This document shows, piece by piece, positions 3,863 through 53,959 of a stretch of 64,000 nucleotides of DNA. Position numbers and translations under genes: made by a program. The DNA is taken from the NCBI GenBank assembly GCA_010909165.1, contig MU008230.1:55769-119768 (forward strand), read 5' to 3'. Under the pieces are notes generated by a model. It worked only from the letters and a program-made list of their open reading frames with translations, was not told the DNA's origin and did no database searches. How positions within the stretch are numbered: the stretch's first letter is position 1; each line of letters starts with the position of its first letter. Origin of the DNA: Anthoceros angustus (taxonomy: Eukaryota; Plantae; Anthocerotophyta).

Positions 3863-5660
3863 TTAGGGGGTTTGAAGGTTACATTCCGCAAGAGCTCCTC
3901 GACATGATGGACTTGAGGAGTGAAGGCCCATGCCAAGAATGGCTGGAAAATGACAAGCATCAAAGAGTCAAGTGGAGGCTCTTTAAGATTGTGTTAGTTG
4001 GTAAACCACCAGGACTATTTCAAAGACCAACTTCCCGCAATTTTGTGGAAGATTTCGAGAGAGCCAAGCCGATTGGGGCACCATCATGTATGAGGCCTAC
4101 ATCCACCAAAGAAGCTCCTCAAGCCAAATTGTGGATGAGGAAGGGCCAAGGCCTGCTACCTTAGCACCTATTTGGTGCATTTGTGGAAACGAAGGGCTTC
4201 TCACAAGCAAGGAGTTGGAAGATGCTTGGCATCCTTCGAGATAATTCATCTCCACCTTTTGGAAAGGCCTTGCCTTTGCATTGAGGAAGACAAGGGAGGT
4301 CGACTCCACAAGCATGCTAGAGCAAGGAGGAGGATGTGGAGGCAACAAGGTTAGTGGGAATCCCCACAGAGCAAGAAAGAGGAGAGGAAGAACCGCCGAG
4401 GAAGGCCGAATGGTAGTCTATGAGAGGAGGACTACCATGTGAGGGGTGAGCCCAAGGGTGGGGAGTCCCCACCATCTCGCTTTGTGCCTAGCAGAGGCAC
4501 CCCCACCCCACCCTAGGGGAGGCACCACCCAAGAGGGTGGGCGACCACCGTGGGAGTCACCTACCACTAGGTAGGCATCACCATAGAGGCACCACCGAGG
4601 CGGTAGAACCCCACGAGGGAAGAAGGTAGGGAAGGGAGGAAGAGGCCGCGGGCGCCTAGGCCGCCACCACTACCCGCTGGAGGAAGGGCGGATGGAGCGA
4701 CTGTGAGGGACTCCCCGCGCTGATGGCCCGGAGTACAAGGGAGCTGGAGATTTCAAGGGGCCAACAAAGGTAATTGGGACCCTAGAGAATTGGTGCTTGT
4801 GAAGCACTCACCATGTGGATTTGAAGGGGCTAGGAGCTAGCAGCCTCCTTGTGGGCATGCCAAGAGGAAGTGAAAGCCCAAGACATGGCCGGAGGAAGGC
4901 TGGGACTGGCAATTGGAGCCATGGAGTCCGAAAAGGCAGCCAAGTTGGGAGAAGGTCAGAGAAGCTCCACGGATCAACGGCGGGAGAAGGTCCTAGAGGG
5001 AAGGTTGTCAAGAGGAGAGAGCCATTCGGCAACAACCCAAAGGGATTCATGGAGAAAGGCGAGGAGCACTTTTGCCCAATTAGAGCAAGAGCGAAGGGCA
5101 AAACGAGGCTCTGAAGGGAGAAGGTAGCGGTCCAAAGAATGGACGCAAGAGTGTGATGGCTACCCAAGCCATCAAGATCCGGACATGAAGAAGGAATTGA
5201 AAAGAGAGGCGCCGAGCTGGAGGCTCAAGACCAAGACTGCAAGAGTTGAGCAAAAAGAGTGCGTGAGGAGAGGGAGAGACTTGCTGCAGAATTGGAACAA
5301 AGGAGGTTCCAGAGGAGGAGCACCACAAGAAGGTGGTGCATGTGATGCCGGGTGAGAGGAAGAAGATTTTGGCATTATGCCCGTGCAAAATGGCCAACCA
5401 AATGGAAGTGAGGGAGGAGAATGTACCTCCATGTCAAGGTGGGAGAATTGACCACCAAGGGATGCCTACAAGGTAGGTGTGAGATGGAGAGTGGCCCACG
5501 AGATTGATGATCTCCAAATGCAATATCATAGCTTGGGGCTCACCTCCATAACAGATTTTGAAGGCCAACAAGTCTTATTGGCCAAGAGGAGGACATTGGG
5601 TCCTCATGATGATGGAGGAGCTGTGCAAGCCTACTTTGATGAGGCTATCAAGTGACATGG
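3863..5660 (+). pseudogene. Degenerate extra ORF of family B (DWGTIMYEAYIH...CYLSTYLVHLW motif)
   Basis: Motif at 4071-4190 conserved in B2 and B3; frameshifted. Confidence 0.6.
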
Positions 5661-7422
5661 ACTCCGAGGAACTGGGAGTCAAGGTGGAGAAGAGCGGCAC
5701 CAAGGGGTGATGGCGGAGAGCAAGGAGGGGGACCCCCGGGGTCACCCTACCATGGTGACACTACCACGGTAGTCCGCCGATCACGTAGACAACACACACG
5801 GTAGTCCCGATCTAGGGCAACCGAGCAGGGCTTGCTGGGAGTCGCGAGCCGGAGGATGAAGGAGCCGGGGTCCGTGACACACCGGAGAATAGAGGAGGGG
5901 GAGACAACCCCACCGAGGAGAGTACGGATCCGCCCCGCCAAGGAAGAAGGGGGGTGAGAAGTTCCTCCCCACGAGCAGGGAAGGGCCCGAGCCAGAGGAG
6001 TCAGATGAAAAAGGCCCGGGATTAGAAGGGATCCGCATGGTCAAATGGGGATGAAGACTTTGAAGATGCTCCATGATAGGTATGGACAAATCAAACAAGG
6101 CAAAGAGCAATGGAGATCTTGACCAACCTCACCGATGGAGAAGAAGGAGAAAGGGCCGACTACCATGGTAAGTCACCACCCCGTAGTCCGCCACTACCGC
6201 GGGTGGGAAGATGACCAGCGCGGAGGCTGAGAAAAGGCGCTGAGCGCGGAGGGGGGCGCATTGCCGGATGATGGAGGAATCAGCGCGCCTGAGATGGAGG
6301 AAGGGGCAAGATTGTACTTGCCCCACACATTGGGAAGATGACAAGGCTGGGAAGGGCAAGAGCAAAAGGAGGGCGAGGGAGCCAATCCACACACGCTGCC
6401 CACCCCAAAGAAGGTAAGGACTAGATATGGTCAAAGACCATAAATGTTGATAGAAGAATAGAAAGGATAGGTGTATCGACATCCTTTAAGGATGATCTTA
6501 GGTGAAGTTAGAATAGAATTTACCAACTATAGTTTAGATGCCGTGCCTTAAATGTCAAGTGTAGGAAATAATAGAATATTGGAAAAGGTGACCGCAGAGG
6601 GTCACCTAAGGGAGGTTGTATGTGGAAGGCCTCCTATAAGAGGAGGAGGATTTCACAAAGTAAAGTATCGCCTTGCCCACCCCGAGTCCTTTGCCATTAC
6701 AGAGGAATTTTACCGTGGAGCCAACGCAGTCTGTAGAGAGGAAGTCGTGGTCTGAGTGTTGGTGGAGGACTTGCTCCCGCAAGTGCCTAAACGAGTTGCT
6801 CCCTTGTGAATGGTGTGAAATTGCTTTGCTTTGGGTGTGTGGCAATGCCTGTGAACTCGGCTTGAGGGTAGACCGTGGAAAGACTCGAGGTTCACTGGTG
6901 TCAAACTCATAGCAACCGCCCAAGGAAGAACTTGCCGGTGGAGGCCGACCCTGTGCACAGCCGTAAGGGCGAGCCAAGAAGCCCGAACCGAGGTTAGAAT
7001 AGGAGGAAGAGGATGAGGAGATGAGTAGAGGATAGTGTAGGTGTTAGTGGAAGGCCACAGTGCCTAAGGGACGAATCCCAACTGCAAGTAAAAGAGCGCC
7101 TCCGAGTGGAGAAGAGTGGTCTTAGAAGTAGGGACGAAATCGCTGTGTCCCCTGGCGCCCGTGATAGGCTCCTCACCGCTAAGGCAGGACCCGCAATTGT
7201 GTTGTGTCGAGGATTGGTGAGGAGCAAGGCAAGTGGTGCACGCCAAGAGGGAGAGTAGAGGGCGCCTTGCTTGTTTAGAAGGCTGAGAAGTTGTGTCTCG
7301 CAGTAGCGATCACAAGACCTCGAACTTTCACACAAGTCTCATGGGACTAAAACCAACGCACGGGCGATGTGATAAGTGTGGCCGCTGGTGGGAGGATCTA
7401 AGCCCGGGTTTTCCCTACCACA
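3863..7422 (+). mobile_element. Athila/Tat-like gypsy family B, copy B1: extra (env-position) ORF remnant, purine-rich spacer and 3' LTR ending ...ccctaccaca
   Basis: Homologous to 45050-49270 (minus), 57929-59500 (minus) and 63022-63475; in B3 the same ORF lies downstream of an Athila/Tat-type integrase. Confidence 0.7.
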
Positions 7423-11335: not shown

Positions 11336-11819
11336 TGACAAATATTGGATAGGATTGGTGTAGACCAATTGCTATATTAAACAATTACATTATATATTTG
11401 TTATATCAATGAGTATATGAAGAATGACATATAACTAACTTAAGCTAGGTAGGTGAATAGACACACCCTTTCATAGAGACGTAACCCTAATGAGCAGACA
11501 CCTAGACTTATAATAGCTATGAACACATTCACTATACATGTGTACCAAACGAACCCTAATGTATTTACCTATTCTCATCACTTGAATGGCACCATCTGCG
11601 CTGCATTAGGTGCCACAAAACAAAGGGTTAGCACTAGGGCATCCAAAATCGCTTCTAACATTTGCCTCAATGTAGTCATATCCTCTGGCCTCACAACGCG
11701 GGCGGGTTGCGAACATGATCTACAAGGGCTTGAAGGGTGTCCGATTGGCGGGATTGAGCTCACATGATCGGCCAGCAGTTGGGCACGTTCTTCCGCGTCT
11801 TTGGACAAATGTGGTCCAC

Positions 11820-12630
11820 CTCCTCCCCTCCCTCCCTCCCATCCCATCCCCATCCCTATCCCCATCCCTTCCCATCCCCATCCCCGCCATCCCCATCCCT
11901 CGCCATCCCATCCCCATCCCATCCCATCCCCATCCCTCCCCATCCCTCCCATCCCATCCCCATCCCCTTCATCCCATCCCCATCCTCCCTTCCCATCATC
12001 CCTGTCCCATCCCTCCCATCCCCATCCCTCCCCACATCCCTCCCTCCCTCCCATCCCCATCCCATCCCCATCCCTCAGGTCTTCCCATCCCATCCCCATC
12101 CCTATCCCCATCCCATCCCCATCCCATCCCATCCCCATCGGTCCCATCCCCATCTCCCATCCCATCCCATCCCATCCCATCCCATCCCATCCCATCCCAT
12201 CCCATCCCATCCCATCCCATCCCATCCCATCCCATCCCATCCCATCCCCATCCCATCCCATCCCATCCCCATCCCATCCCAATCCCATCCCTGGTCCCAT
12301 CCCATCCCATCCATCCCCATCCCCATCCCATCCCCATCCCATCCCCATCATCCCCATCCCATCCCCATCCCCATCCCATCCCCATCCCCATCCCCATCCC
12401 ATCCCATCCCTCCCCATCCCCATCCCCATCCCCATCCCCATCCCCATCCCCATCCCCATCCCATCCCCATCCCCATCCCCATCCCCATCCCCATCCCATC
12501 CTCATCCCCATCCCCATCCCCATCCCTCCCCATCCCCATCCCCATCCCTCCCCATCCCCATCCCCATCCCCTCCCCATCCCCATCCCCATCCCTCCTCAT
12601 CCCCATCCCCTCCCTCCCCTATCCCCATAC
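11820..12630. repeat. (CCCAT)n/(CCCCAT)n microsatellite, about 800 bp
   Basis: Directly visible. Confidence 0.95.
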
Positions 12631-13969
12631 TTTTCCTCATCCCTCCTTACCTCCTACTATATAATTTTACTTCATGATATTAACTACAATATTTCTGTAA
12701 TCTTACTACAAATATTTACTATAAAATATTACTCTGGTCTTTTTCTACAACGGAGATTTACAAGCGGTACCCGAATTTACAGCAATTTGTCGGATTACTT
12801 AACCGTGATGAATTAACTATGGTCAACATGTGATTAACCAAACCCACTCATTTAATTACGGTTAATATATTGTAGTTAGCTAATCTCGGTCAACTAACCA
12901 TTATTTTTAACCACGATAAGGCCAGTATTAAAGTCCGTGGTTGTTCAACGTAGTAAATACTGTGGTAAAAGCTATGGTAATTTAAAGATTAACTAATATA
13001 CGGTAGACTTCATTAACGTACTCCGTACATACTTCGTATAGAATACACAATATAGCCATCATATACGATGTACTGGACTTTACCACGGACACTAATGCTA
13101 TGTGTTTACTACTGACGTTTTACTCCGGGAGTAGTAATGACCATTGTAAAAGCCGTAGTAATGTCCGTGGTAAAAGTATACTTTTCCTAGTAGTGATGTA
13201 TATATGTGTGGGGTGGATGTCATGGCCCCATGAGCGATGAGTGCGGAATGAAGACAAGCGTTAATTAAGGCTCCGATTAAGATCTCTCGGGCAAGGCCAA
13301 GACATGGCTCTTCTAATCCAAGTGGTGATTAAGGCTCAAGCGGTGGAGGCTACAAAGGGCAGCATCGTCATTGATCAAGCGGATTGTTGATGTCCGTGAG
13401 GAGAATGACCACACAGATCCCAAGCTCTCAAACGCGTCTTGCAGGAGCGATTTTCAGCAGTGATGTGTGTAGGAGATGGTGACCACTTAAAGACTAGATT
13501 TTTGCACATCAATAATCCCTGCTGACGAAGCCGCACAAGAATAGCAACGTGACTCGAAGGGCTCGAAAGAGCAGCCCAAGATTTGAGCGGAAGGCTGAGA
13601 AGAGGACGCAGAATCACCACACAGCTAAGTCCATGGTGGATTACCGGTGAAAGCACTTTGGATTATTTACTGTTGTTTTATGCAGGCAGATCTAGTCAAG
13701 AGGGGCCAATCTAGCGGAGCTGGAAAATCGATGCCTCCTTTTTTGACATGAGCAGGCCTTCCAGCCATTAACGTGTATACATCTTCATCCGAGTCATAGT
13801 CATCTGCCGAAGCACACGGGCCTTTTGTTGTGCTCACACTCCTGGCCAGCTGCTCTTGCAGCCGTTGCACCTCATTGAGCAATGCCTTCCGAGTGTAGCT
13901 CACACCCGGTTTCTGCTTGTCTGCTACTCGGTCACCTAGGCCCTTGGGCTTGAGTTCATGATGAGCTTG

Positions 13970-14402
13970 TGTTAACTGCTGTTTTGCAAGCTTTAAAGCA
14001 ACAAAATAAGTTTCGAAAATCAGCTAAAGCGAAAGAATTAAGCAAAGATCAAAGTATAATTGCCTTAATTAGATTAAGCTTAACTCACATTGAGTTAGCA
14101 TTAACTTGCAGTTTAGCTAGAGTTAGCGGCTATATAAGTTGGCTTTTCGGCAGTTTTTAGTTCAGTATGAGATTGTGAGCTCAGAGAGAGCTACACAGAG
14201 AGCACAGGAGAGAGAGATTGGTGACCCGTGGAGGGTTCTGAGATTGTGATATTGAGAGCCAAAGCGCTAGAGATTAATAAGAGAATTGAGCATTGTACTT
14301 GTGTTTGTGAGAAAGTGAGCGTTGTTGTGATGTTGGATGCTGGATTGCATATTTTCTGCGGGAATCCCTATGTTTGATAACCTGGGAATACTTCTAGCTA
14401 CA
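13970..14402 (+). repeat. 5' LTR of element H (433 bp, TG...CA), TATA-like tatataag at 14131
   Basis: First 226 bp match 19268-19493 with 6 substitutions counted by eye; directly followed by PBS. Confidence 0.88.
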
Positions 14403-14405
14403 TTT

Positions 14406-14422
14406 TGGCGCCGTTGCCGGGA
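14406..14422 (+). promoter_or_regulatory. Primer-binding site complementary to plant tRNA-Asp 3' end (Athila-type)
   Basis: TGGCGCCGTTGCCGGGA versus canonical TGGCGCCGTTGCCGGGGA, 3 nt after LTR-terminal CA. Confidence 0.9.
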
Positions 14423-14512
14423 TTCGTCTGCGAGAAATGCAAAGAGGAGTTCAGCGTGCAATTGTGTGTGTGAATTTGAAGAGATGAGAAAAACATTGAG
14501 TGATTAAAAATC

Positions 14513-15011
14513 AAAAGAGAGGAAGAGAAGAGAAGAGAGAGTAGAAGAGAGGAAAGGAGAGGAAAGGAGAGGAAAGGAGAGGAAAGGAGAGGAAAGGAGA
14601 GGAAAGGAGAGGAAAGGAGGAGGAAAGGAGAGGAAAGGAGAGGAAAGGAGAGGAAAGGAGAGGAAAGGAGAGGAAAGGAGAGGAGGAGAGGAAAGGAGAG
14701 GAAAGGAGAGGAAAGGAGAGGAAAGGAGAGGAAAGGAGAGGAAAGGAGAGGAAAGGAGAGGAAAGGAGAGGAGGAGGAAAGGAGAGGAAAGGAGAGGAAA
14801 GGAGAGGAAAGGAGAGGAAAGGAGAGGAGAGGAGGAAAGGAGAGGAAAAGAGGAGGAAAGGAGAGGAAAGGAGAGGAAAGGAGAGGAACGGAGAGGAACG
14901 GAGAGGAAAGGAGAGGAAAGGAGAGGAAAAGAGAAGAAGGAGAAAGAAGAAGAGAAGGAAAAAAAAAAGGGAGAAGAGAAGAAGAAAGAAGGAAAAAGAA
15001 AAAGAAAAAAA
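14513..15011 (+). repeat. Near-pure purine tract, core (GGAGAGGAAA)n
   Basis: Directly visible. Confidence 0.95.
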
Positions 15012-15689
15012 TGCAGGATCCTACACGCATCCGAATTAGCGAGCGCAAGAACGCCTCCGGCAGTGCGACCTGCGGCAAACGAGCAGCACCAGCAATCGCA
15101 GCGCGCACAACAGCGCCATGCTGCCGGGGCGTCAACTGTAGTAGGCCGGGGCACGCAAATCGAGGGCACACAGAACGGCAGCGGCAGGCTGCTTGGCACA
15201 CAGCAGCCGGCTAGCAGCACTTCCAGAGATTGGAAGGGGCGAGACGATCCCGCCGCGCGACAGCGAGGGCGGTTATTTTCGAAAGCGCTCCTACGACCTC
15301 GGCTTGGGGGGCTGTGGATGAGGCGAGCGTGATTGGGAAAGGCACGCCAAGCTGGTGGTTTGGCATTTGGCGGCTCCAGATCGGAAGGGTTTGAACTCGA
15401 GGTGCGAGCTTCCAGCAAGTTATGCACGAGATTGTAGGAGCCGCGTTCATCTGGATTTGGTTGTGGAGTGATGCTTGAGGTTGAGCCTAGTTCCACGGGC
15501 TTAGCCCAGGGTTTCGCTGCTAACCGGATCTATGTTGTTGCATGGTTGGCGATGGAAGTGACAGCTCTCTCCTCGGTTTAGTAGTTGCCCTTGTGCTGGT
15601 GGTCTGGAATGCCTGATTTTGGAAGCAGAAGAGCTTACCGTAAGGGTTCTATTTCCTGCTGCCCTACAAGATGTTAGTGGATTACCGAA

Positions 15690-18362
15690 ATGGAAGTGGA
15701 CTACAGCTACAAAGCTCGAGATCGAAAGGATCTTTACGAATCCTATGTTACAGTCGACGGAGGGAAGCAGGTCAAGCATTTGCGAGAAGCCATATGGAAG
15801 AAGTCCATGGCCACTTTTCAGGATTTCGAAGGTATCAAGGGGGACGAGCACCTCCGTCTGTGGAAGAAGAGCGATGGAAAATCCCTGGAGCTGCCCACGA
15901 AGTTATCAGCAGCGTTTAAGGATGATGAAGACAAGAATGTTTCTGTCACCCCTGTTGGGGCAGAAAAGTGGAATGATGCTTTTGTTGTCAGTGACCGTCA
16001 GAAGGCAGGAAAATGGGATACTCCGATGGCGCAAACAGATGTTAAGGAGGAGCTCATTCGTGTCTTTGGTGATCGTATTCGACACGCAAGGACCTTACTT
16101 CCAACTTCCAACAATCGTCTGCTAGATAGTGAGTTGCCGTTGAAGCCTGACCAGTCTTTACTCGATGATATTGGGCAGTACTTCCCTCTACAATGTCGGA
16201 AGTCTTCGTTCCGTGCAGCACTTTATAGTACTATTAAAGTTTTTCAGTTGTTCATGAGAGAGCCAGCCTCTCTGCATTGCTCCGATGAACTGACAGAAGC
16301 CATGTGGAAGAGAAATGGGCTTTTGATGATGCTTATTGCATACCCGGGTAGTGGGAAGACTACATTTGGGAAGGCGCTACGGGATCTTCTTGTGGTAGAC
16401 ATGGATAATTACAACAAGGGTCAACCATCCTGTCTGGCTGAATGTCTCAAACACTTTAAGCCGCAACTGGAATGTGATTTCAAACAGATGATCAAGAATT
16501 CTCTGAAGCACAACTTCGCGCTCCACCACACTTTGCATGCGGACGCGGGTGCTGTTATGCATTTGGAAAAAGGTCTGAGCGCACGAAATATACTAGGCTT
16601 GAGGGTGTTTTACTCTACCTTTGGATTGGATGCCAGGCACGGTTATATGGATTTTTTAGATGAGATATATTTACTTGGTAAGGGTGTCCTCACAGCTGTG
16701 GACTTGCAAATGGTGTTTGAGATTATTCGTGGAGTCTTACGAGTACCTGCGCATGAGAGGATACTCCTCCTCTTGTTTTTTGATGAAGTAAATGCTGCTC
16801 GAAGAAGGCTGGGCTGGATACCTGGAAGGGAGCAGTTGGAGGATGGGCTGTCCGATGATGATCAGACAACATGGGCTCAACAACTGTTCTCGGAGTACAT
16901 CAGTCATCTGAGTGACACGCGCCAGGGAATGACGTTACCCATTTTATTTGGTGCTACAACAAGGCACTCCGCTGCCAGTCTCAAATTCACTGAAAGTGGC
17001 AGCACACGCTCCTACTTGATCCCCCTGCCACCTCTGTCTCAACAAGCTACAAAGGAGATGGTGATAGCGTTGCACCGAAGGTTGGAGCTGACTATGGCAA
17101 AGTCCACCCAAGTCTGGGATGTTCCACAGCATGTGAAGGACCTTCTCCAGATCTGTGGGGGGATGCCACGGCTTTTGGCGTATGCATTCAGAGCCTTACT
17201 GCTCAAATCTGATGACAGTCGTATTGGCCCTGAAGAGCTATTAAACGCTTTGGAAAAGACCTCTGTCAACGCACCTGACATGCGCAGAGTGACAACGAAA
17301 TTAGAGCGCATGGTTTTTGACAAGGTGGTGTTCAGATCTTACGTAAATGTAAAGAAGTTTCCAGTGCTGGAAAGGGCTTTTGGTATTTCTATATTGGGAA
17401 GGATGGTGCGTCGGAAGGATCAGGTTCTTCATCCCTTTTGCGATAGATGGGGCGACTTAGAAGCGCAAGGTGTGGTTCTCCTGAATTTAACTAACCACAG
17501 TGAACATCATCGGAGGAAGAGGCTGCGGATGAATGAGGAGAAGCAGGAAGTAACAGAACGTAAAGTTGTTCTAACTGTCGTTGGGGGCAACGAGTTCATG
17601 GAGGAAGACACCGATGTGCCTGACACGACGGATGTTGGGTCAGTAGAAGTCCATGTGTCCTTCTGCCCTCTCATGCTGAAATATATTGTGGAATATCAAG
17701 AGGAAGAGTACATTTCATTGTGGCCAGAGATGTGGCAAACGGCGGATTGGAGGACTAAGGAGGAGGCTGATATCTTAACGTTGCTATTCAAGTTACGGCT
17801 GATGAAACAGTTTGGTCAGAACAAGTTTCGACTTACGGATCTCCTGCCTCGGGGTATTCGTATTCCTGTTGGGTTGACAGAGCTCTGCCTGAACATCCCA
17901 GATGTTTTTGTGCGACCAAAACCCATACCTGACGCAGGAAGCAATGACTGTTGGGCTTTCATGGGAAGGACTAACTATGGCGCAGACTCTATGATATTCC
18001 TGACTCAGAAAAGTGAGAGTCGTGGGAACGACGCCAACATCAGTCTCATCATCGAAAGCAAAAAACGGGTGGAGGCGGCGACAGTGTCGTTGAACTCTAT
18101 TATGAGGAAGCAAAAACATGTGACAGCGAAGCATAAACACCTTCTCGATGCCCGGGGGTCGTTAAAAAACATTTTTCTGTACATCACGGATGAAAAGTTG
18201 ATCAACAAAGACAATTCGAGGTCTGGTGAATCTCCAGGGAGCGATCTAATGGAGAACCTGATTGTGTGGGATGCTAGCGTTTTAGACGAAGGGCCTCTAC
18301 ACGCCCTTGCAGCGTTAAGGCACTACAAGTACTTGTTCCAGGAAGAAAGTAGCACAAGTTAG
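15690..18362 (+). CDS. Crinkler/CR-effector-like protein, 890 aa: Ubl-like header, P-loop NTPase, PD-(D/E)xK restriction-endonuclease-like domain
   Basis: Uninterrupted ORF; header VKHLREAIW...LRLWK (aa 55-59)...VSVTP; Walker A AYPGSGKT (16338-16361); Walker B LLLFFDE (D365-E366); nuclease-like NYGADSMIFL...IIESKK (D766, E789-x-K791). Confidence 0.8.
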   Translation: MEVDYSYKARDRKDLYESYVTVDGGKQVKHLREAIWKKSMATFQDFEGIKGDEHLRLWKKSDGKSLELPTKLSAAFKDDEDKNVSVTPVGAEKWNDAFVVSDRQKAGKWDTPMAQTDVKEELIRVFGDRIRHARTLLPTSNNRLLDSELPLKPDQSLLDDIGQYFPLQCRKSSFRAALYSTIKVFQLFMREPASLHCSDELTEAMWKRNGLLMMLIAYPGSGKTTFGKALRDLLVVDMDNYNKGQPSCLAECLKHFKPQLECDFKQMIKNSLKHNFALHHTLHADAGAVMHLEKGLSARNILGLRVFYSTFGLDARHGYMDFLDEIYLLGKGVLTAVDLQMVFEIIRGVLRVPAHERILLLLFFDEVNAARRRLGWIPGREQLEDGLSDDDQTTWAQQLFSEYISHLSDTRQGMTLPILFGATTRHSAASLKFTESGSTRSYLIPLPPLSQQATKEMVIALHRRLELTMAKSTQVWDVPQHVKDLLQICGGMPRLLAYAFRALLLKSDDSRIGPEELLNALEKTSVNAPDMRRVTTKLERMVFDKVVFRSYVNVKKFPVLERAFGISILGRMVRRKDQVLHPFCDRWGDLEAQGVVLLNLTNHSEHHRRKRLRMNEEKQEVTERKVVLTVVGGNEFMEEDTDVPDTTDVGSVEVHVSFCPLMLKYIVEYQEEEYISLWPEMWQTADWRTKEEADILTLLFKLRLMKQFGQNKFRLTDLLPRGIRIPVGLTELCLNIPDVFVRPKPIPDAGSNDCWAFMGRTNYGADSMIFLTQKSESRGNDANISLIIESKKRVEAATVSLNSIMRKQKHVTAKHKHLLDARGSLKNIFLYITDEKLINKDNSRSGESPGSDLMENLIVWDASVLDEGPLHALAALRHYKYLFQEESSTS

Positions 18363-19252
18363 ATAGGCGACAATTATTCTTTTTCTGAGCGGGGGCAGGA
18401 TCACGTGACAATTGCCTTGCTTTCCAGAGCTGCTGCTGTTGTGGCCATTCTGTCATCCGGGCATGTGTTTGGCCGTTCTGTCATGTAGTAGACAAGACGG
18501 TGCATGGTAGGCAACGGAGCTTGCACGCTAATGCATTGTAGGTAGCCAGCAGTTCCAGCAAAGTGAACTAGTGAACTACGCCTGAAACTTTTGATGTACC
18601 AGGAAATCGAAGTGGTTATTGTTTGCCTTTATTTGGAACTCTAACAATGTTGCTGAAAAATATGAAAATATGAGAAAAAAGGAGCATGAAAAAATAAGCA
18701 AGAAAAAAGCATCGGAACAGGAATAACAAAATACTTCACGGTTTTTTATGAAGGGAAGAAGTTTTTAATGTTTTTATGTGGCACAATTATATCTTGAGGA
18801 AGAAGAATCAATTCTCAATTCTAAAATAACATGGTTATTAAGGGTGCATGTGAAATTCTATACCAAGGCAAAACCAAATACCCTAAATCAAGGCGATGTT
18901 GGGGCAAGGCTGCATTTTGTTTTGTCGCTGCGAGGAGAAAGTCATGTGCCGAGAGAACAGTTTCGGGATGGTTTGTCCCTGTTAGGCCTAATGAGTGAAT
19001 CCTAGTGGGATGGTGGGATGGACATCTGTTGTTTGATTGGTTTTCCAAATTTTCAAGTTCAGCAGCACTCAAACTCAAAGATCTCTTTAGTCCAAGAACA
19101 ATCCAGACTCTTCATGGGAAGCCAGCTCACTACTCCACTCTCAGAAGCTAAGCTTATGCAAATCAAAGAATGCACTCAATGAAGGCTACGTAACCCTGTG
19201 AAGGGTGAGATCATCAGCAATAATCACTCGACAGTCAACAAGGCCTACGGAT

Positions 19253-19267
19253 AAATTGGGGAGAGTA
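19253..19267 (+). promoter_or_regulatory. Polypurine tract of element H
   Basis: aaattggggagagta directly before the 3' LTR TG; resembles Athila-type PPTs. Confidence 0.7.
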
Positions 19268-19493
19268 TGTTAACTGCTTTTTTGCAAGCTTTAAAGCAAC
19301 AAAATAAGTTTCGAAAATCAGCTAAAACGAAAGAATTAAGCAAAGATCAAAGTTTAATTGCCTTAATTAGATTAAGCTTAACTCACATTGAGTTAGCATT
19401 AACTTGCAGTTTAGCTAGGGTTAGCGGCTATATAAGTTGGCTTTTCGGCAGTTTTTAGTTCAATATGAGATTGTGAGCTAAGAGAGAGCTACA
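19268..19493 (+). repeat. 3' LTR of element H (226 bp, truncated)
   Basis: About 97% identical to 13970-14195. Confidence 0.9.
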
Positions 19494-21431
19494 ACATCAA
19501 ATTCAAAATCGTCACCACTACCAGTAAGCCGGTGTTTCGAAGAAGGCATAAGCTGAGCCCCATGGAATGGGACATCGTGGACAGACGCTGCAAGGAAATT
19601 GCAGCAGGTGGACTGATCCGGGAATCGAGCTCGCAATATGCTGCAGCCACGGTCCTGCCATTAAAGAAAGATGAGGATGGCGAATGGAAAGACAGACGGA
19701 TGTGTGGAGACTATCGAGCACTGAATGAGGTGACGCCCGTGGAGCGATATCCGATGCCCACATCGAGGAAGAAGATAAGTGCAAGACAGCCTTCTGGGGT
19801 AAGGAGCAATTATGGGAATGGGAGACGATGCCGTTATTGTTGAAGAACGCATCCATCTACTTTCAACGAGTAGCAGACTTGGAGTTACAAGGGCTACCAT
19901 TTGTGAGATGTTACATCGATGACATTCTAGTATTCAGCAATAGTTTAGAGGAGCATATTCAACATCTCGAAACGCTGCTACAGAGGCTATCTAACTCAGG
20001 GCTGAAGGCACATCCAAAGAAATGAAAGTTTGCCTACAAAGAAATCGAATACCTTGGTCATAAGATCGTCCCAGGTGGTGTACTACCACAGTTGGCAAAG
20101 GTGCAAGCTGTTAATCTCATGCCTAGGCCACAGGATGTTGCTGCCCTGAGAGCGTTTCTAGGACTCGTTAACTAGTATCGTCGCTTCATAAAGAACATGA
20201 GCAGCACGCAGTCGCGTATGTTAAAAGGAGTGCAATGGCAGTGGGAGCAGGAACATGAACATGCTTGGCAGGAACTGAAGGCACAACTATCAGAAAGGCC
20301 CATGCTCAGGAGGCCTGACTTTGACAAACCATTTATCCTATACAGTTAGATGCGGCGAATGGTGCTTGCATGATGGATGGGGAAGGAAGAGAACGAGTAG
20401 TTGCGTATGCAAGCAGATCTAATAATTCCGCCGGATCCAACCACTCATCTTATGAGGGAGAGTGTCTAGCCGCTGTGTGGGCAGTTTTACACTTCAGAAT
20501 CTATTTGTTTGGCAGAAGTTTCCAGCTCGTCACCAATCACCAGCCATTACACTGGCTGATGACGAACATGAAGTTGAGTGGCAAGATTGCGAGGTGGGCA
20601 CTACTACTGTCAGAGTATGATATGCACATAGTGCATCGAGCAAGAAAGGTGCACCACAATGCTGATGGACTTAGCAGAAACCCACTGTGCAATGATAGGG
20701 ATACGACTGGTGCACGACAGGATTTCGGGTATGCTCATCATATGCCAAGTTTGTATATGGCACTTTCGGGACGCGGGCGGAAGGAGAAGAACTTCGTCGA
20801 ATGCAGACAATACGTTGAAGGATGGGCGGTATGAGTGCGGATCATGACAATTCAAAGATTGACGAAGACCATGCGTTACACATGGAGGGATGGCAAACTG
20901 TTCATGATTGATCATGGGGTGAGTAAAGAAGTGCCTCCCGTAGAGGAACGAGAGCAGATAGTGACCAAGGTGCATAGGACACTTGGACATTTCGGCGTGA
21001 AACGGACACATCACATGCTAAAGAGTGCATACTTTTGGTCACGAATGTATGCTGATGTTGAACGAGTAGTGGCGAGGTGTGCTGCTTGTGATGCAGTCAA
21101 GGCAAGGTTCAATAGCCAGGACGTGGTGTTACATTCACTTCTCATCAGAGGACTATTCTTCCGATGGTCCGTTGATCTAATGCCTGAGCTACCATTGACC
21201 AAGCAAGGCAACAAACATTGCATGCTCATGATAGAACATTTCTCAAAATGGGTGGAACTGGCATTTCTTCCAGCTAGAACCTCGCAGTACACGGCCCGGG
21301 CATTTCTACAGTGTGTTCTGAGTAGGTATGGAAGCTGTGCAGAGGTGTTGACAGATGAAGGGAACGAATTCAGGGGTGAATTTCAAGAGTTGTTGGATAG
21401 GAGTTTGATAGATCACGGGCTTCGGTGGTGA
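19494..21431 (+). pseudogene. Ty3/gypsy pol (RT, RNase H, integrase), copy 1, degenerate
   Basis: RRMCGDYRALN, YIDDILVFS, SYEGECLAAVWAV, HNADGLSRNP, integrase H-H/C-C zinc region and FRWSVDL...IEHFSKW. Confidence 0.92.
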
Positions 21432-21460
21432 TCATGGGCGGGCTGGAAGCGGCGGCGCTN

Positions 21461-23523
21461 TGCCTTCCTGGCGTTGGACTTTCGATCTGGTTTCAATCAA
21501 ATCGTCATCGAGGAAGAAGACAAATGCAAGACATCATTCTGAGGTAAGGAGCAGTTATGGCAATGGGAGATGATGCCATTTGGATTGAAGAACGCATCCA
21601 TTTACTTTCAATGAGTAGCGGACTTGGAGTTACAGGGGCTACCATTTGTGAGGTGTTACATCTATGACATTTTGGTATTCAGCAATAGTTTGGAGGAGCA
21701 TATTCAACACCTTGAAAGCGCTTATTGCAGGCTATCTAGCTTTCGGGGAGAATTTGAGAATCCAAAAAGTGGCGTTTGCCTACAAAGAGATAGAATACCT
21801 TGGTCATAAGATCGTCCCAGGTGGCATGCTACCACAGTTGGCAAAGGTGCAAGCTGTTAATCTCATGCCTAGGCCACGGGATGTTGCTACTCTGAGAGCG
21901 TTTCTAGGACTCGTTAACTACTATCGTCACTTCATAAAGAACATGAGCAGCACCTGCAAAGTGTTGTATGAGTTGTTGAAAAAGGGGATGCAATGGCAAT
22001 GGGAGCAGGAACATGAATAGGCATGGCGGCTGAAGCAGTGTTGTGAGAGGCCCATGCTCGGAAGGCTGGTGCGACAAAGCGTTTGTCCTATACAGTTGGG
22101 TCGCGGTAGGAATTAACATTCTTGCAGGTGGATGGGGAAGGAAGAGAATGAGTCATTGCGTATGCAAGCAGATCTAATAATTCCGCCAAATCCAACTACT
22201 CATCTTATGAGGGAGAGTGTCTAGCGGCCTTGTGGGCAGTTTTACACTTCAGAATCTATTTGTTTGGTAGAAGTTTCTAGCTCGTGACCGATCATCAGCC
22301 ATTACACTAGTTGATGACGAACATGAAGCTGAGTGGCAAGCTTGCGAGGTGGGCACTACTACTATCAGAATATGATATGCACATAGTGCATCGAGCAGGA
22401 AAGGTGCACCACAATGCTGATGGACTTAGCAGAAACCCAATGCGCAATGATAGGGACACGACTGGGGCACGACAAGATTTTGGATATGCTCACCAAGTGC
22501 CAAGTTTGTACATGGCACTCATGGCCACGGAGCAGGAAGGAGAAGGACAGCTCGTCGAAGGCGGACGGGACATATGGAAGCATGGGCCAGCCATACAGCT
22601 ATTGAAGGATGGACAGATAGGTAGTATGGATGTTGCAGCAATTCAAAGACTGCAACGAAAGACTATGCATTACACATGGAGGGATGGCAAGCTGTTTGTG
22701 ACAGATCATGGGACGAGTAAAGAGGTGCCGCCCATAAACTGAGTAGATATGGAGGCTGTGCAGAGGTGTTGATAGATCAAGGGAAAAATTCAGGGGTGAG
22801 TTTCAAGCATTGTTGGATAGGAGTTTGATAGATCATAGACGCACGTCACGAGACCATCCTTAAGCGGATGGTTTGGCCGAACGGCTGGTGCAAACTTTCA
22901 AAGATGCTCTTGGCAGTCGCACAGGTCGAGCCCAATTTTAGGATGAGTTCTTTGTATGCCTTGCCTCTGATTCATTGTCACAGCGGCGTTGGGCAATTTC
23001 AGCCCATATTATATCATGTTTGGCAGGAACGCTATATTGCCAAACATAGTGGCAGACACGTATTCCAGACCAGTGAATTGGGCACAAAATGTGGATGAAT
23101 GCTTCTCAGAGCTACGAAACAGAGCCAAACTGTTACAACGTGTAATACCAATGGCAATGGACAACTTGGCTATCGCACAACATCGAGATCAATTGAGATA
23201 TGCATTTACTCAAGGGGGATCGTGGAAGCCAAAGGCCAAGAAATTCGAAGTAGGTGACTTCGTGTATCTTCAGCATCGCCCTTCTGGCTTTTTGGATGTG
23301 AGCACAGGATGATTGATTTTGCGAGTGGTGAATATTGGTGAGCAAGGGGTCGTCGAGTTGAAGGAGGCCACCAATCGATCTTCCGTGTGAACATTGTGGC
23401 CAGGTCACAGACCCGGAACTTATGCTTTTATGTGACTAGTGCAACCAAGGGCATCACGTATTTTGCCTTCGGCCCCCACTGAAGGTGAATGGTTCTGCCA
23501 TAAGTGCTCAACACAAAAGCTAG
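21461..23523 (+). pseudogene. Ty3/gypsy pol, copy 2 (RT end, RNase H, integrase, C-terminal PHD finger), degenerate
   Basis: Repeats motifs of 19750-21400 after the N at 21460; PYYIMFGR, KFEVGDFVYL; PHD at 23386-23507. Confidence 0.9.
23386..23507 (+). other. PHD finger (C4HC3) coding segment at integrase C-terminus
   Basis: CEHCGQVTDPELMLLCD*CNQGHHVFCLRPPL/EGEWFCHKC; one stop (23437) and one frameshift. Confidence 0.85.
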
Positions 23524-25400: not shown

Positions 25401-26559
25401 CAAGCCGGAAAGGCGGTGGAGGCGAGGATGGGCCCCAGCAGTTTGAGGGGTCAGAGTGATCGAGGGGTCCGAGACTTGAGAGTCCGGACTGTAGGTCGAA
25501 CCACGAGGTCCGAACTCAGAGACGAGGCCGGACCCGAGGTCCAGGACTACGAGAATAAGCCCACTTCTCGAGGATCGGACCCTCGGGTCGAGAGACCCCG
25601 GTCAGGTCCGGACTTAGAGGAAGGAGAGGACACCCCAACTTGCTTAGGGAGGTCCCCAAGCGGTGGCCCTATAGGGAGGGGACCCACCTCGGGCCGGGAG
25701 GAGGATGTGGTGGTTACCGCATTGTCGGACCGCCCGCCGTAGCCCAACTCGGCTGTGGTCTCGAAGGAGGGTCACCTACCGCTGGATCATCCGATTGCGC
25801 CCGTAACTATCGTAAGGCGGTGTTGTATAAATACGTTTAATTATGCACCGCCGGACTAGAACGGAGATTAGGCACGCTTTCACTTAGGGTTCTACGAGTA
25901 GTTAAGTAGTTACCAATAGCAGTAAGTAGCTTGAGGCTTCAACTTAACTCAAACAGATTTAGAGTTCAGATTATGAATAAAAAATGCTTTTTCATTCACG
26001 CTGCCGATCGCTTTATGGTATCGATGAAGAGCTCCTTGTCAGATGGTAGCCTTAGCCTCTCGCGCCTCGAGCTATCAAGAATCACCAAGCATCATGGCGC
26101 CAAGGCCACCATCAGAACCTCGACATCGAATCGAGTCCCCAACATGCCTCGCAGACGCACACCGGCATTGTATGCGCCACAATGCCTACCGCCGCGAGCG
26201 GCGAGCCGACCCTGTGAAGATTGCGTAGAGAAATTCAGATCCGGAGGGTTTGCTGCTTCACACGGACCCAGCGCGCCTCTCCGGCGGATCTCCTTACCTG
26301 CACGCCACTGCACATCCGAGGTCATACCACTCGCATAAATTACTACTACCAAAGACAAACTCACACAGATCTGGAGCACCTGCGCGTTCAAATCATCAGG
26401 CTGGAATCACAGTTGGAATTTCTCTCAGCAATGGTGCGAGACATGGCCATTGTCGCCAATAGGTAGAACACCGAATCATGCATGCTCGATCCTCTTAGGG
26501 ACCACCGCACCAAGAGACGAAGGGCAAGAAACATGGCCACCAATGTACCCATCCGTTGT

Positions 26560-28530
26560 AAATACACGATTATAAGTACAACGAAGTTGAATTCCGCGAT
26601 CACATCGCCTTCACGCAACGACTACGATACCTGGCAAATGCGCATTACGGCACTGCTAGAAGAACATGACCTCATGGGAATCATGGAAGGCACCGTCACA
26701 AAACCCATCATCGAGATCAAAGAATCACGATCAAATCGCAGCCTGGAGAAAAGGCGACAAGAGAGCCATCAGTATCCTTTTCTCAGCACTAGACAAGAAC
26801 ATGCTCCAGCATACGCAAGGCCAAAAGACAGCCTACGATATATGGAAGGTGTTCAAGGACATGTTTCAAGCTCAGAGCTCCATGTCCACAGTAAACGCCA
26901 CACGGCGCTTTACTTGCCGAGAATGAAGGAGCGATGCTTGAGCAACATGTGCACAACTTTCGAGTCGATGAGCCAAACTCACGTCAAGCGGCACCACTCT
27001 AAATGAATATCATGTTAACTAGCATTACTAACATCTCTTATGTAATCCTGAAGTATCCCTTGACAGCACAAGATATACCTTGTCAAGTCTTAGCGCATTG
27101 CTCAAGAAGAAGCTACCGATCACAACACATTAGGCTACGACAGGGCCAAACCACGCCCTCTTCGCATCAAGGGGCCGTGGTTCAAGAAGAGGCGGCTTCA
27201 GAAACAACTTCTCACGAAGACCACCTGGACAAGCCCCACACAACAGTTTCGGTCAAGGAAACCGATTCACACCACAGAAATCACAAAAGGGAGCCTGCAA
27301 TTGGTGTAAGATACCCGGCCATTTTGAGCATGAATGCAGGAAGAAGCAGAACGGAGAGCCTAGGCGAGAGACTCCCAGAAATAAGTCTCACATGACTACC
27401 TCAAGAGCTACACCATCAAACTCTATTCTCGCCATCTGTCTTACCTTGACGGCCGGGGCGGATAAAACACGATGGTTCCTCGACTCAAGCAACACGCATA
27501 TTTGCAGTGCAAGGACATATTGCACATACCACGATCCTCAGCGGCCAGCGTATTATTAGGGGCAACACTTCTGAGTGAGGCACGGAGAAGTACTACTCTG
27601 ACTATCAAATGGAGAGACCCTCACCATCAACGGAGTACTCCACGTTCCCACCATGACTAAAAACCTCCTTTCTGTCAGGAAACTCGCCACTGAACATGAT
27701 CTGGTCATCACTTTTCAAGGTAACCACTGCACTATACACCATTCCAAAGACCCAGGTAATGCTGCCTTGGCTCATGGACTCCCTTACAATGACTTGTATC
27801 TCCTAAACATCCAGTCTTCATCATCCCTCCTTGTGGAAGGCACCCCTCATAGCTCCCACAAAGAGTCTCTCTTATGGCACTGTAGGGCAGGTCACATGAA
27901 CCCCCGCTATTTAAACCAGTTTGCCAACCCAGAAATGTACCGAGATCCCATCAAACTTGAGTCAGCCCGGACTTTTGCGAAATATGCGATTACACAAAAC
28001 TCAATCAATCTCCATTTCCCCACCGTTCTCCCACCAGAGCCCGTCGCCTTCTTGAGCCCACTCGGATATCTCTGCCCCATAGTACCACATCCTTTGGCGG
28101 CCGTTCATGCTTCATCACCTTTTAGGCAGATGGGCGGTACTTTCACATTTCATTTCTTCAAACACAAGTTAGAAGCCTTCTTTGTTTCCGAGTTTTGCTA
28201 CTGGTGCGAGCATGGCGGCTTCGGTCACCACCACGCATACAGACAGCGGAGAATATGTCGACCATCCTTTTCAAGCTACGCCAATCCCACGGCATCCAGC
28301 GCGAATTCATTCCCTACACCTTCACGGAACCCTTGGCGGAGCGTCTCAACCGATCCATCCTTGAGATCTCCCGCTCCCTTCTCAAATTGTCAGGCCTCTC
28401 TCGAGGCTACTGGGCAGAAGCTGTGTCCACCGCCATTTACCTCCGAAATCGCCTTCCCACTAAGGAGCTCCCCAATACCACTCCTTTTGAACGCTGGACG
28501 GGCCATAACCCCGCATTTCCCACCTGCAGA
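26560..28530 (+). pseudogene. Copia C gag, zinc knuckle, protease, integrase (frameshifted)
   Basis: DYDTWQMRITALLEEHDL, CNWCKIPGHFEHEC, WFLDS, LWHCRAGH, YWAEAVSTAIYLRNRLP. Confidence 0.9.
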
Positions 28531-28534
28531 AAGA

Positions 28535-31500
28535 TGTGTTTTATTATTGTTTTGAATAATAACATGTTCTTGAAAAGGAACTTTTAAAGAAACATCAAGA
28601 AATGAATTTTGTGTTGTTTTTCTTTAAAAATCTATACAAATTCTTGCTGCATTAGGTAGCCATTCTAGCGTGCATTCATTGAATTGCTCCCTTGAGCAAT
28701 TGCAATGAACATACACTAAACAATGCCCAATGGGCAAAATTATATATAGAAAAATACAAAAGAAATATAAGATGCACATTTCGCACTTATAAAACACAAA
28801 TCCTTGTTGCACATGGCCTTTAGATTTACCAGCGGTCGCAACACCACGCTACTCGAATCATCCTAGGCAAAATAGGTCAAGAATTGATGGGCACACAATT
28901 GCTTCTCGATTACATTCGGCATCCTACAATGGAGCCAACAAAACCAAAATAGACCTATGCAAATTGCTGATCCGAGAGGCGCATTTAATACTATTGTGGA
29001 ATTTCTCTATCCTCAAGAGCGAGAATCGTGTTTACTCTTCCTCCAAGAAATCCACTAAATTTGCGGCGTGTACAAAGAGCTTTTGATGGAAGCAGGCAGC
29101 CCGTGGTTTCATCACAACTCAAGGCCACAAACACAGTGTCGGCAATAATTAATCATCGAAGCAAATAAGGATAGTGGACCGCACACAAATTAATGGACAC
29201 TTGTCTCTGACAAGCGTTGACTTACAGGATCTGAAGGAGCAAGTTGCACACTTGGACTACAAGTGGTTATCTTGTTGGGCAGATGCTCAAAAATCCAGTG
29301 TTGAAACACCACGCCGTAAATAAGACAAATCGTGAAGCTTTAGCTCACTTAACTCGTGTCCATCTTGCTCCACGTATGCCTACAATAGGTTCGAGATGAG
29401 GAGCTCCAAAATTGCGCTACGAGGAGGATCAGGATCAAAACACCGCGCGAGAATCAACAAGCGTTATGATCGGGGCGGTTTTGGGGATATATTCAATACG
29501 GTGAATTTGAACGAGGTCGAACAACAAGCCATAAATATGGCAAAGCACCTCAACTCCAAACTATGGAGGTAATGAATCCTTCAAGGAGAAGGATCGGTTC
29601 AATGGCAATGACTTTGACATATGGCGGTCCGGATGGAGGGCGTCCTCGAAATGAGGGCCTGAAACATGCAACCGGAAAGGTAGTGAAACCGGCGAGGATC
29701 TTGAGAAGAAGAATGGTTAGCTAAGGATAAGCGGAGCCAAGTACCTCATTCGTGGCTCGAAATGTTGAGGCAATGGGTGGAAACTTCAGCCGAAATCATG
29801 AATCTAAAGGAACTCTCGCAGCGAACATGGTCGGTGCAATCACTTTAAGAAATTTCCGAACTTGAGAATGAAGGATGGGGACTCGGTGGAGAAGCACGTG
29901 AGTACCTTTAGGACCCTAGCCTCCCGGCTTCAAGGTGCCTCTAAAGTTGCCATCAAGGATGATGAGATGGTGATGAGGCTCCTTCTTCGCTTCGAGTCTT
30001 GGTCACACTGTGACCTCCCACTGTGCTCGAGACACAAGCTACATTAGCTAAGAAGCAAGGCATAGAGATGCAGATGTCATTCTCACAACTTGTGAGTTCC
30101 ATCGCAAGAAGAGGCAAGCGGAACTAATCACAAGAAAGCGAGGAAACAACAGCCTGTACACCTCAAATCAAGGGCGAGGCAAGAAATCCTTCTCCAAAGG
30201 AGGTGGTGGAAATCCTTCCAAGGGAGGTAGCTCAGCGGATCCTCATGGGAAGAAGACTAAAAAGCAGCACCTGGCGGTGCAAGGCACTGGACATTGGGAA
30301 AAGAGTGTCGCAAAAGCAAGCTGGAATTCCTAGGAGGGCACCAGTGACGCCAATGTTGTGGTAAAGAAGGCTAAATCAGCTCTTACGGTTGGGACTAGGG
30401 AGTTTGCTAGTCCATTCGCTTCCACTTGCCTTTACAAGCTAATGAAACCAATAGATGAATGGTATTTAGATACGGTGCTCGCACATACGCTTTGATAGAA
30501 ATGCTTTCAAAACATATAGGTCTTTTCGGATCGATGTTTACCTTGGGGGACAGTCTCTAGTCTCACACAGTGGTACGCAGTTGAGTTGCTAGTTCCTCTG
30601 AGGATCACACTCATGTTGTTAGAAGTCTACTATGTGCGAAATGACTAGAAACCTTATTTGATCGAGATTGAATGCGATAACAACGATCACGTTGTTTTCA
30701 CTAGGACAGTAGAATCATAGATGCTATTGACCCTAGAAAGGTCCTTGCACATGGGTCTTGGACCACGATCTGTTAGTCTCCATTTGCACTGGAGTAGTCC
30801 CACGACACAAGACGTCTCCTTGCATCGCACAACAAGACAAAGTCTAAGTTGTGGCATGCGCTTGGGTCACCCTCACATGGCAAAGCTGCAAAAATTGGTG
30901 TGGTGACACTGTCAAGATGGACCTATTGGCCCTTTGAGCCATACCTTTATGTGAGGCTTGTGTGTTGTCGAAGAAACACCAAGTGCCTTCAAGAACAAAG
31001 CACCTCATCGTCTTGATGATCTCCTTGAGCTTGTACATCGACCTATGTGGACCCTTATCTCAAGCGTCCATAGGAGGTGGGCGTTATTTTCTAACGTTCT
31101 GAGATGACAAAGCGGTTGTCACCACCTATATCCTGAAGAACAAAAGCGAATGTTTCTCCTACTTCAAGGAATACATCAAATTGAGCGTTGGACGAAAAGC
31201 TCAATCAAGACCGAGATCGATAATGGGGAATTTACATCTAATGAATTCCAGCGATTACGAAAGATGAAGGCATTGGGCGCCAACTCACGTCAGTATACAC
31301 TCCACAGCGAATGGAGTGGCGGGCGCTTGAACCTCACATTGCGGAGATGGTCTCCTCATTGTTACATGATGCTCATTTGCCACTACCCTCTTGTGAGGCT
31401 TTGATGACTTCAACTTTTCTCGAGCAGTTACCCACCACTGCTGAAGGCAAAACTCCTTATGAGGTTTTGAGGAAGCCCTCTATTCAACACTTGAGGACCT

Positions 31501-53730: not shown

Positions 53731-53959
53731 TAGAAAGCTTTGGTATGAAAGTGGAGGAGTGGTCCATTCATACGGGGACGCAGTGTGATGTCTGGAACTA
53801 CGGCGAGGAGCTTCCTCTGATGCTGGTTCAGGTTCAGATTCAGATTCTGCGTCTTCCTCTTGTATTGTGGCTTCCGAAGGTGATACACTATTTGTCTCTT
53901 CATTTGGACTTTCAGTCTCCTCTTCGACTTCATCTTAAGGAGTAAGGGTTGCATCACTC

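Follow-up and report, generated by a model that had tools for sequence, protein, structure and literature searches.

A plausible gene-transducing LTR retroelement in Anthoceros angustus with a complete ATPase-nuclease gene as its only coding content

A complete gene for a predicted ATPase-nuclease is the only coding content of a defective long terminal repeat (LTR) retroelement in the genome of Anthoceros angustus (Anthocerotophyta). The element lies in contig MU008230.1 of assembly GCA_010909165.1, within a stretch of 64,000 nucleotides (positions 55,769 to 119,768 of the forward strand) that was analyzed as a whole and is referred to below as the window; all positions are counted from its first letter. 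The element retains Athila-type signals for copying, a single intact open reading frame (ORF) of 890 codons, and no recognizable gag or pol domain. This combination makes it a plausible gene-transducing defective LTR element; copying or spreading of the gene by the element is nowhere demonstrated. Gene capture by LTR elements is already known in plants, as are Crinkler-like (CR-like) proteins in land plants and teleost cases of a CR-like toxin gene multiplied with the aid of transposons (PMC12957317). The new instance described here is a complete ATPase-nuclease gene that constitutes the sole content of a presumably helper-dependent, Athila-type element in a green-lineage genome.

The element is delimited by a direct repeat, the members of which (13970-14195 and 19268-19493) align over 226 bp with 6 mismatches and no indels, corresponding to 97.3% identity. 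This agrees with the original prediction, made from the sequence alone, of a 433-bp LTR with TG..CA ends and a second LTR about 97% identical to it over 226 bp. Since the primer-binding site (PBS) immediately follows the 433-bp version, this is taken as the full length of the LTR, and the 226-bp repeat was rejected as its true length. The 5' LTR contains a TATA-like box (14131-14137) and an AATAAG motif at 14276.

The signals for reverse transcription are located where they had been proposed. Three nucleotides downstream of the 5' LTR lies a 17-nt PBS of the tRNA-Asp/Asn type (14406-14422), which occurs once in the window and whose first 13 nt are identical to the published tRNA-Asp/Asn PBS of ATHILA (bioRxiv 10.64898/2026.03.20.713144). 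In ATHILA elements, this site is complementary to the common 3' end of tRNA-Asn and tRNA-Asp and is preceded by an AT-rich spacer of 3-6 bp (bioRxiv 10.64898/2026.03.20.713144), and the identical 13-mer is given in a paper on the peanut retrovirus-like element FIDEL. The window contains no tRNA gene with which the PBS could be compared directly, and no Rfam family. At the other end, a noncoding interval of 0.9 kb separates the ORF from the 3' LTR and terminates in a polypurine tract (PPT), a purine run at 19253-19265 that stops 2 nt before the LTR. The two LTRs lie 4.9 kb apart, and they as well as the PBS and PPT point toward the interior of the element, in the correct order and orientation.

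Pfam searches of the 890-codon ORF and of the ten longest other frames between the LTRs returned no match to gag, protease, reverse transcriptase (RT), RNase H, or integrase, in line with the earlier claim, and the element is therefore regarded as non-autonomous. In its anatomy it corresponds to an LTR retroelement of the non-autonomous kind, furnished with Athila-type cis signals. The PBS 13-mer placed after an AT-rich 3-nt spacer, the TG..CA LTRs, and the PPT are features common to ATHILA/Tat elements (Ty3/gypsy) and their LARD-type derivatives. Unlike ATHILA/Tat elements, the present one has no pol by which it could be placed phylogenetically and no env-like ORF. An autonomous gypsy element sharing its LTR, to which the original prediction had looked, does not occur in the window, where the LTR pair represents the only copies of this repeat and a third is missing. 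The coordinates of the individual parts are collected in Table 1.

Table 1. Parts of the element and its downstream neighbor, by position in the 64-kb window
Feature	Position	Strand	Description and basis
5' LTR	13970..14402	+	433 bp, TG..CA; direct repeat with 19268-19493
PBS	14406..14422	+	17 nt, after TTT spacer (3 nt); ATHILA tRNA-Asp/Asn type
Leader of the element	14423..14512	+	90 nt; no similarity elsewhere in the window
GA-rich microsatellite grading into A-rich run	14513..15011	+	Tandem Repeats Finder (TRF); ORF lists
GC-rich block upstream of the ORF	15012..15689	+	up to 64.5% GC; composition step at about 15000; no Pfam domain
Intact gene	15690..18362	+	890 codons; N-terminal module, predicted STAND/AAA+ ATPase, winged helix, and PD-(D/E)xK nuclease
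N-terminal module (residues 16-98)	15735..15983	+	PF20147 below cut-off; 43% identical to stand-alone ORF P0015; low-confidence model
ATPase and winged-helix region (residues 112-600)	16023..17489	+	predicted; Foldseek, motifs
Nuclease domain (residues 650-882)	17637..18335	+	predicted restriction-endonuclease fold; Foldseek, conserved motifs
3' UTR-like stretch	18363..18712	+	ends in degenerate A-rich tract 18656-18712 (TRF); GC 31% at 18600-18800
3' internal region of the element	18713..19252	+	AT-rich, noncoding; composition, ORF and Pfam scans
PPT	19253..19265	+	purine run; 2 nt upstream of 3' LTR
3' LTR, incomplete (226/433 bp)	19268..19493	+	97.3% identical to 5' LTR
Degraded Ty3/gypsy pol fragment (neighbor outside the element)	19494..23312	+	RT, RNase H, integrase; ORFs and Pfam, self-similarity

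Between the PBS and the gene, the purine tract of 0.5 kb described in the original prediction was recovered by TRF at 14513-15011. It consists of a (AAAGGAGAGG)n microsatellite with a 10-nt unit in 43.8 copies (14513-14943), continues A/G-rich to 15011, and yields spurious long ORFs on the minus strand. The GC content then rises to 61-65% at 15000-15400, is about 47% across the ORF, and drops to 31% at 18600-18800, just past the A-rich tract. The parts that belong to the element itself (the LTRs and the 3' internal region) have a GC content of 33-43%. The observed/expected ratio of CpG does not separate the gene from the transposons of the window. This profile fits a block of about 3.7 kb (approximately 15012-18712) that would be a discrete foreign insert, with a poly(A)-like tail, in an AT-richer element. 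The GC-rich block upstream of the ORF is presumed to be the left part of the acquired insert, representing a 5' untranslated region (UTR) and/or the gene's own promoter, and the 3' UTR-like stretch presumably forms its right end.

The reading preferred here, to which about an even chance of being correct is given, is that the gene was transduced into the element by recombination during reverse transcription. In such an event, a host transcript or a read-through fusion would have recombined with the RNA of the element while it was being reverse transcribed, and the captured 3.7-kb block would have displaced the gag-pol region. The resulting composite could then have been copied solely with proteins from an autonomous relative acting as helper, and a later loss would have removed the 3' part of the right LTR from this copy. 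The captured gene might be expressed from either the LTR or the GC-rich block. Transduction explains in one step why every trace of gag and pol is gone. Defective transducing retroviruses serve as a model for gene transduction of this kind.

Gene capture by plant LTR elements has been documented, and maize Bs1 provides the model (PMC13317346). As in Bs1, a host-derived coding sequence lies between LTRs equipped with PBS and PPT, the genes of the element itself have been lost, and copying would depend on a helper (PMC13317346). Bs1 and most other plant cases consist of gene fragments fused to element sequence, whereas here a whole, intact gene of 890 codons is the sole coding sequence. A further difference from the Bs1 type is that one copy is known in the present case, and no parent gene.

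Because part of its right LTR is gone and no target-site duplication is present, the copy in the window must be viewed as a fossil. It has been rearranged at least once and can no longer count as a clean insertion. The heptamer AGCTACA forms the last 7 bases of the full LTR (14396-14402), occurs once inside it (14189-14195), and is found nowhere else in the LTR. The partial 3' LTR stops exactly at this heptamer (19487-19493), and a random truncation point would meet it with a chance of about 1 in 400. Loss between short direct repeats is therefore favored over random truncation, and the simplest reading suggests that the 3' LTR lost the part between the two heptamers while its CA end stayed.

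Several observations weigh against transduction. The locus shows no target-site duplication (TSD): the original prediction had pointed to duplications of 5 bp, and the 5-bp flanks are GCTTG and ACATC, which do not match under the heptamer-deletion reading either. Because the 3' LTR is incomplete and a TSD is missing, a clean single insertion is not demonstrable. Neither a parent gene nor an autonomous partner is available, the source genome being absent from the collections that were searched. The GC-rich stretch of 680 bp contains upstream ATGs and looks as likely to be a promoter as a 5' UTR, which would fit an insertion at the DNA level. The lack of introns in the ORF is weak evidence because a relative in Selaginella moellendorffii has long exons over the same region, and the A-rich tract at 18656-18712 is degenerate. 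The intact state of the ORF is compatible with neutrality and is no proof of selection, since at the LTR divergence seen (Jukes-Cantor distance 0.027, with a raw distance whose 95% interval is 0.010-0.057) the ORF is expected to have accumulated about 36 substitutions, and the probability that none of them creates a stop codon is 0.2-0.4. Lastly, the window holds no second copy of the ORF and no LTR beyond the pair, and no match was obtained in JGI metagenomes with the ORF protein and an LTR 25-mer or in IMG/VR with the LTR-PBS junction. This lack of further copies is uninformative because the source genome is not represented in those collections.

The main rival, itself judged rather unlikely, is a nested later arrival, in which a retrocopy or a DNA fragment of a host gene landed in a small non-autonomous LTR element that was already present. 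Such an element would have comprised the LTRs and about 1.2 kb of internal sequence, and the proposal, equally improbable in this part, implies that element and gene never moved together. A poly(A)-primed insertion would be compatible with the discrete boundaries in composition, the A-rich 3' tail, and the A-rich sequence to the left and right of the insert. The GC-rich block upstream may be a promoter belonging to the gene, and this block and the flanking A-rich sequence agree with the rival no less than with transduction. The ORF is, in addition, intact. The 64-kb window consists almost entirely of transposon sequence, so a new insert of any kind would end up in a transposon. However, the flanking A-rich sequence is of low complexity, and no convincing duplication can be called in it. 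The incoming copy would moreover need to have hit the short internal region of an element devoid of gag and pol, and not the far commoner LTR or pol sequences.

The incomplete 3' LTR, the missing TSD, and the unrelated flanks are also what would be seen if two independent remnants, a 5' LTR with PBS and a PPT with partial LTR, had come from different copies of the same family and happened to flank a resident host gene. An identity of 97% between the LTRs is within the range for different copies of a young family. Nevertheless, one family would need to have inserted twice in the same orientation, and two deletions would need to have left only the inward-facing ends, which are too many coincidences, and only two copies of the LTR exist in the 64 kb; this explanation is thus considered very unlikely. 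The least credible of the alternatives, a highly improbable one, is an assembly artefact in which an LTR element and an unrelated gene were brought together through collapsed or chimeric repeats. The region is dense in repeats, a long microsatellite lies beside the left junction of the insert, and the junction at 19493/19494 is abrupt. Against this, the order of the internal signals is exactly that of one element, and neither runs of N nor duplicated junction sequences were seen.

The cargo was correctly recognized from the start as an intact ORF of 890 amino acids in the sense orientation (15690-18362, plus strand). It lies on the same strand as the LTRs and is the longest ORF in the window, about twice the length of the next real ones, which belong to a copia element (437 and 381 codons). 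An open frame of this length is not attributable to chance at the given base composition. The N-terminus of the product is complete, because its first residues are shared with relatives from Adiantum, and no hydrophobic N-terminal stretch is present. Just 5' of the start codon, at 15632-15670, a GTAAG-type motif, a pyrimidine run, and an AG are found; this arrangement is splice-like but too short for a plant intron.

An AlphaFold2 model of the product, built on 19 relatives, reached a mean predicted local distance difference test (pLDDT) score of 72 and a predicted template modeling (pTM) score of 0.72. Residues of about 112-600 and 650-880 are modeled confidently, and residues 1-110 have a pLDDT below 50. 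Residues 112-600 are predicted to be a STAND/AAA+-type ATPase with a winged helix. Intact ATPase motifs occur in this region, namely Walker A at 220-225 and Walker B at 363-368, together with GGMPR at 490-494, which corresponds to the GGxPR conserved in the family. Foldseek searches with the whole model returned the NB-ARC domains of the plant NLRs NRC3, Sr35, and NRC4, as well as ORC/Cdc6, Apaf-1, CED-4, the archaeal Walker ATPase PAB2304, and TnsC of Tn7, all with probabilities of 0.96-1.00. Sequence searches against the PDB gave generic P-loop matches only.

The C-terminal part is modeled as a nuclease with a restriction-endonuclease fold. When residues 640-890 were modeled on their own (pLDDT 73), Foldseek matched them to MspJI, MUS81, BbvCI, AspBHI, Card1, the nuclease domain of Avs3, and FokI, all of which are PD-(D/E)xK enzymes. 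The matches are consistent and the best E value (1.5e-3) is marginally significant, so the predicted nuclease fold may be called moderately well supported. In the family alignment, a conserved G-x-D-S is followed by (E/Q)-S-K, here represented by GADS at 764-767 and ESK at 789-791. PADLOC and NCBIfam profiles gave no relevant match to the product. Taken from the model and the motifs, the protein can be read as a cytoplasmic, ATP-regulated nuclease of conflict or immunity type.

The N-terminal module is the least well defined part. The Crinkler header profile PF20147 aligns with residues 20-67 at 16.6 bits, below its cut-off of 24.6 (E 0.014), and residues 1-110 are modeled as helices at low confidence. 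Residues 16-98 do form a real conserved unit, with 43% identity to a stand-alone ORF of 171 residues (P0015) from another plant-like genome. A ubiquitin-like character of the header is plausible because in a relative from Klebsormidium a ubiquitin domain scoring near the threshold precedes the ATPase by about 100 residues. Its likeness to Crinkler headers in particular is weak: of the N-terminal motifs that PMC5289972 gives for oomycete Crinkler proteins, LXLFLAK is represented by an L-x-L-W remnant at residues 55-58 and HVLVXXP is absent.

These features bear on the original description of the product as a Crinkler-type protein, which was confirmed in part. According to the account of Zhang et al. 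(2016) contained in PMC5289972, the enzymatic toxin parts of CR proteins come after a header of ubiquitin-like type, and NTPase, helix-turn-helix (HTH), and restriction endonuclease (REase) form the commonest architecture in Phytophthora. Headers that lack LXLFLAK and HVLVXXP are also accepted there (Zhang et al. 2016, via PMC5289972). The folds and motifs of the NTPase, HTH, and REase parts were borne out, and, as far as the architecture outlined in PMC5289972 goes, the order of modules appears to be the same, with a small N-terminal header, a P-loop ATPase, a helical or winged-helix part, and a nuclease of restriction-endonuclease fold. The predicted ubiquitin-like header, by contrast, stays below the Pfam threshold, both motifs are missing in intact form, and no sequence similarity to oomycete or fungal members was detected. 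Membership in the CR group is not established for these reasons, and the label "Crinkler effector" is not supported. It would be fair to say, judging by the modeled folds, that the protein may function in the manner of the NTPase-REase portion of CR toxins.

Unlike CR effectors, the protein comes from a non-pathogen of the green lineage. Because the host is a non-pathogen and a secretion signal is missing, a reading as an intracellular, ATP-gated nuclease of immunity or conflict type, following by analogy the logic of NLR and Avs proteins, may be at least as apt as that of a CR effector. The resemblance to STAND immune proteins is seen in the ATPase model, which aligns best with NRC3, Sr35, NRC4, Apaf-1, and CED-4, and in the match of the nuclease model to the Avs3 nuclease domain. 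The protein differs from the STAND ATPase-nuclease immune proteins, such as bacterial Avs3, and from plant NLRs in having no repeat-type sensor, in the C-terminal position of its nuclease, and in matching no PADLOC or NCBIfam profile.

Relatives of the protein are confined to green organisms wherever their source is named. A phmmer search of 1.84 billion cluster representatives produced 21 matches at E <= 0.001 with 25-42% identity, and every match with a named source belongs to the green lineage (Viridiplantae); no oomycete, fungal, or animal protein is among the 21. The named relatives come from Selaginella moellendorffii (about 10 genes), Adiantum capillus-veneris, Klebsormidium nitens, K. 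subtile, Chlorokybus, Coccomyxa, and Myrmecia. A word-indexed homology search with the ORF product gave one match, from Adiantum. No close paralogue (more than 45% identity) exists among representatives of about 15 billion proteins, a collection that does not include the source genome, and public assemblies hold no record of the exact product. The relatives are ordinary chromosomal genes, which shows that the cargo of the element is a gene of cellular type.

The genome of Selaginella is instructive in this respect. Its paralogues lie together on a few scaffolds, and the family has expanded in tandem, as several paralogues share scaffolds. At one locus (GL377653.1, 713472-736073), a relative with at least one intron adjoins duplicated pentatricopeptide repeat (PPR) genes and is not accompanied by LTRs; a fragment of a further paralogue lies about 10 kb away. 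The growth of the Selaginella family is thus a matter of tandem or segmental duplication and did not take place on LTR elements. One of the Selaginella paralogues, P0010, has a weak C-terminal kinase match, which is reminiscent of the REase-kinase combinations mentioned for CR proteins in PMC5289972. In Logan run SRR33208241, a plant-like genome, nuclease and N-terminal modules appear as separate short ORFs (L001, 5895-6332, and L002, 2623-3138) on different contigs and in genic contexts, one of them next to a PPR gene. They could be either fragments or exons belonging to a gene rich in introns.

The original prediction went further and proposed a vehicle that amplifies the gene, in which helper Athila/Tat machinery repeatedly retrotransposed the composite, resulting in expansion of the gene family or in a selfish carrier of a toxin. 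The 5' half and the PPT do provide all cis signals for copying in trans, the LTR divergence is low (2.7%), and the missing TSD would be compatible with recombination involving two members of one family. A precedent exists in teleosts, where CR-like toxin genes were multiplied with adjacent transposons (PMC12957317). Yet a single copy is seen in the window, the JGI metagenomes, and IMG/VR together, its 3' LTR is incomplete, and it is not bounded by a TSD. Selaginella, the sole genome with a visible expansion, has tandem chromosomal genes without LTRs, and no paralogue above 45% identity was found among the 15 billion proteins, a result that is uninformative if the source genome is absent from that collection. 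A multi-copy vehicle is accordingly considered unlikely. Less likely still is the stronger form of this idea, in which an Athila-type element acted as a dedicated carrier that spread the intact CR-like ATPase-nuclease gene to many loci and in which the nuclease could serve the element. In such a carrier, the nuclease could be a selfish toxin, a drive-like cargo, or a factor acting on host defense.

The teleost precedent concerns AACRNL, a Crinkler-like ADP-ribosyltransferase (ART) multiplied with adjacent transposons (PMC12957317). It shares with the present case a CR-like gene of toxin type, a degenerate header, a free-living eukaryotic host, and a physical tie to transposable elements. It differs in that its carriers are hAT and mariner DNA transposons, its toxin is an ART, and several copies exist (PMC12957317), whereas here a nuclease gene lies in one copy of an LTR retroelement.

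The sequence that borders the element downstream is a degraded Ty3/gypsy pol fragment, which sets in abruptly where the partial LTR stops and has neither gag nor protease. Its pol domains are spread across at least 6 separate reading frames, which implies at least 5 interruptions, and a stretch of about 1.2 kb within it is duplicated once in tandem, at 82% identity. The fragment and the element have no LTR in common, and no autonomous partner with the LTR of the element is present in the window. A simple nested insertion of the element into this gypsy copy was considered and rejected, as the sequence upstream shows no relationship to gypsy pol. Gypsy pol is found downstream and none was found upstream, so the two flanks are not one interrupted sequence.

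Other repeats make up much of the remaining window. A C-rich minisatellite of about 1 kb with units of the CCCAT/CCCCAT type occupies 11700-12650 and accounts for spurious ORFs on either strand, 214-350 codons in length. Ty1/copia elements are located at 52585-55273 (minus strand) and at 26482-28555 and 35591-36220 (plus strand). The minus-strand copia contains the best-preserved transposon ORFs of the window, with an RT of 380-381 and an integrase of 436-437 codons, and the best match of this integrase among 5.8 billion proteins has 45% identity. Another repeat family, extending over at least 3.5 kb with about 80% identity, is represented at 3883-7422 and, inverted, at 45050-48651, with further pieces at 58062-59094 and 63022-63385; it includes strongly purine-skewed, GC-rich stretches.

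With one fossil copy, the element is a well-documented curiosity and a lead. Plant LTR elements usually capture fragments of genes, and a complete, apparently functional nuclease gene as sole cargo would, if the reading is true, be the plant counterpart of a transducing retrovirus. The case also ties in with the ideas that toxin modules of CR type exist in free-living eukaryotes and that such modules multiply with transposons. If the element did act as a carrier, it would offer a retrotransposition route for the expansion of families of conflict genes, and the existence of many copies would explain by a concrete mechanism how a family of conflict or immunity genes can expand rapidly in algae or non-seed plants.

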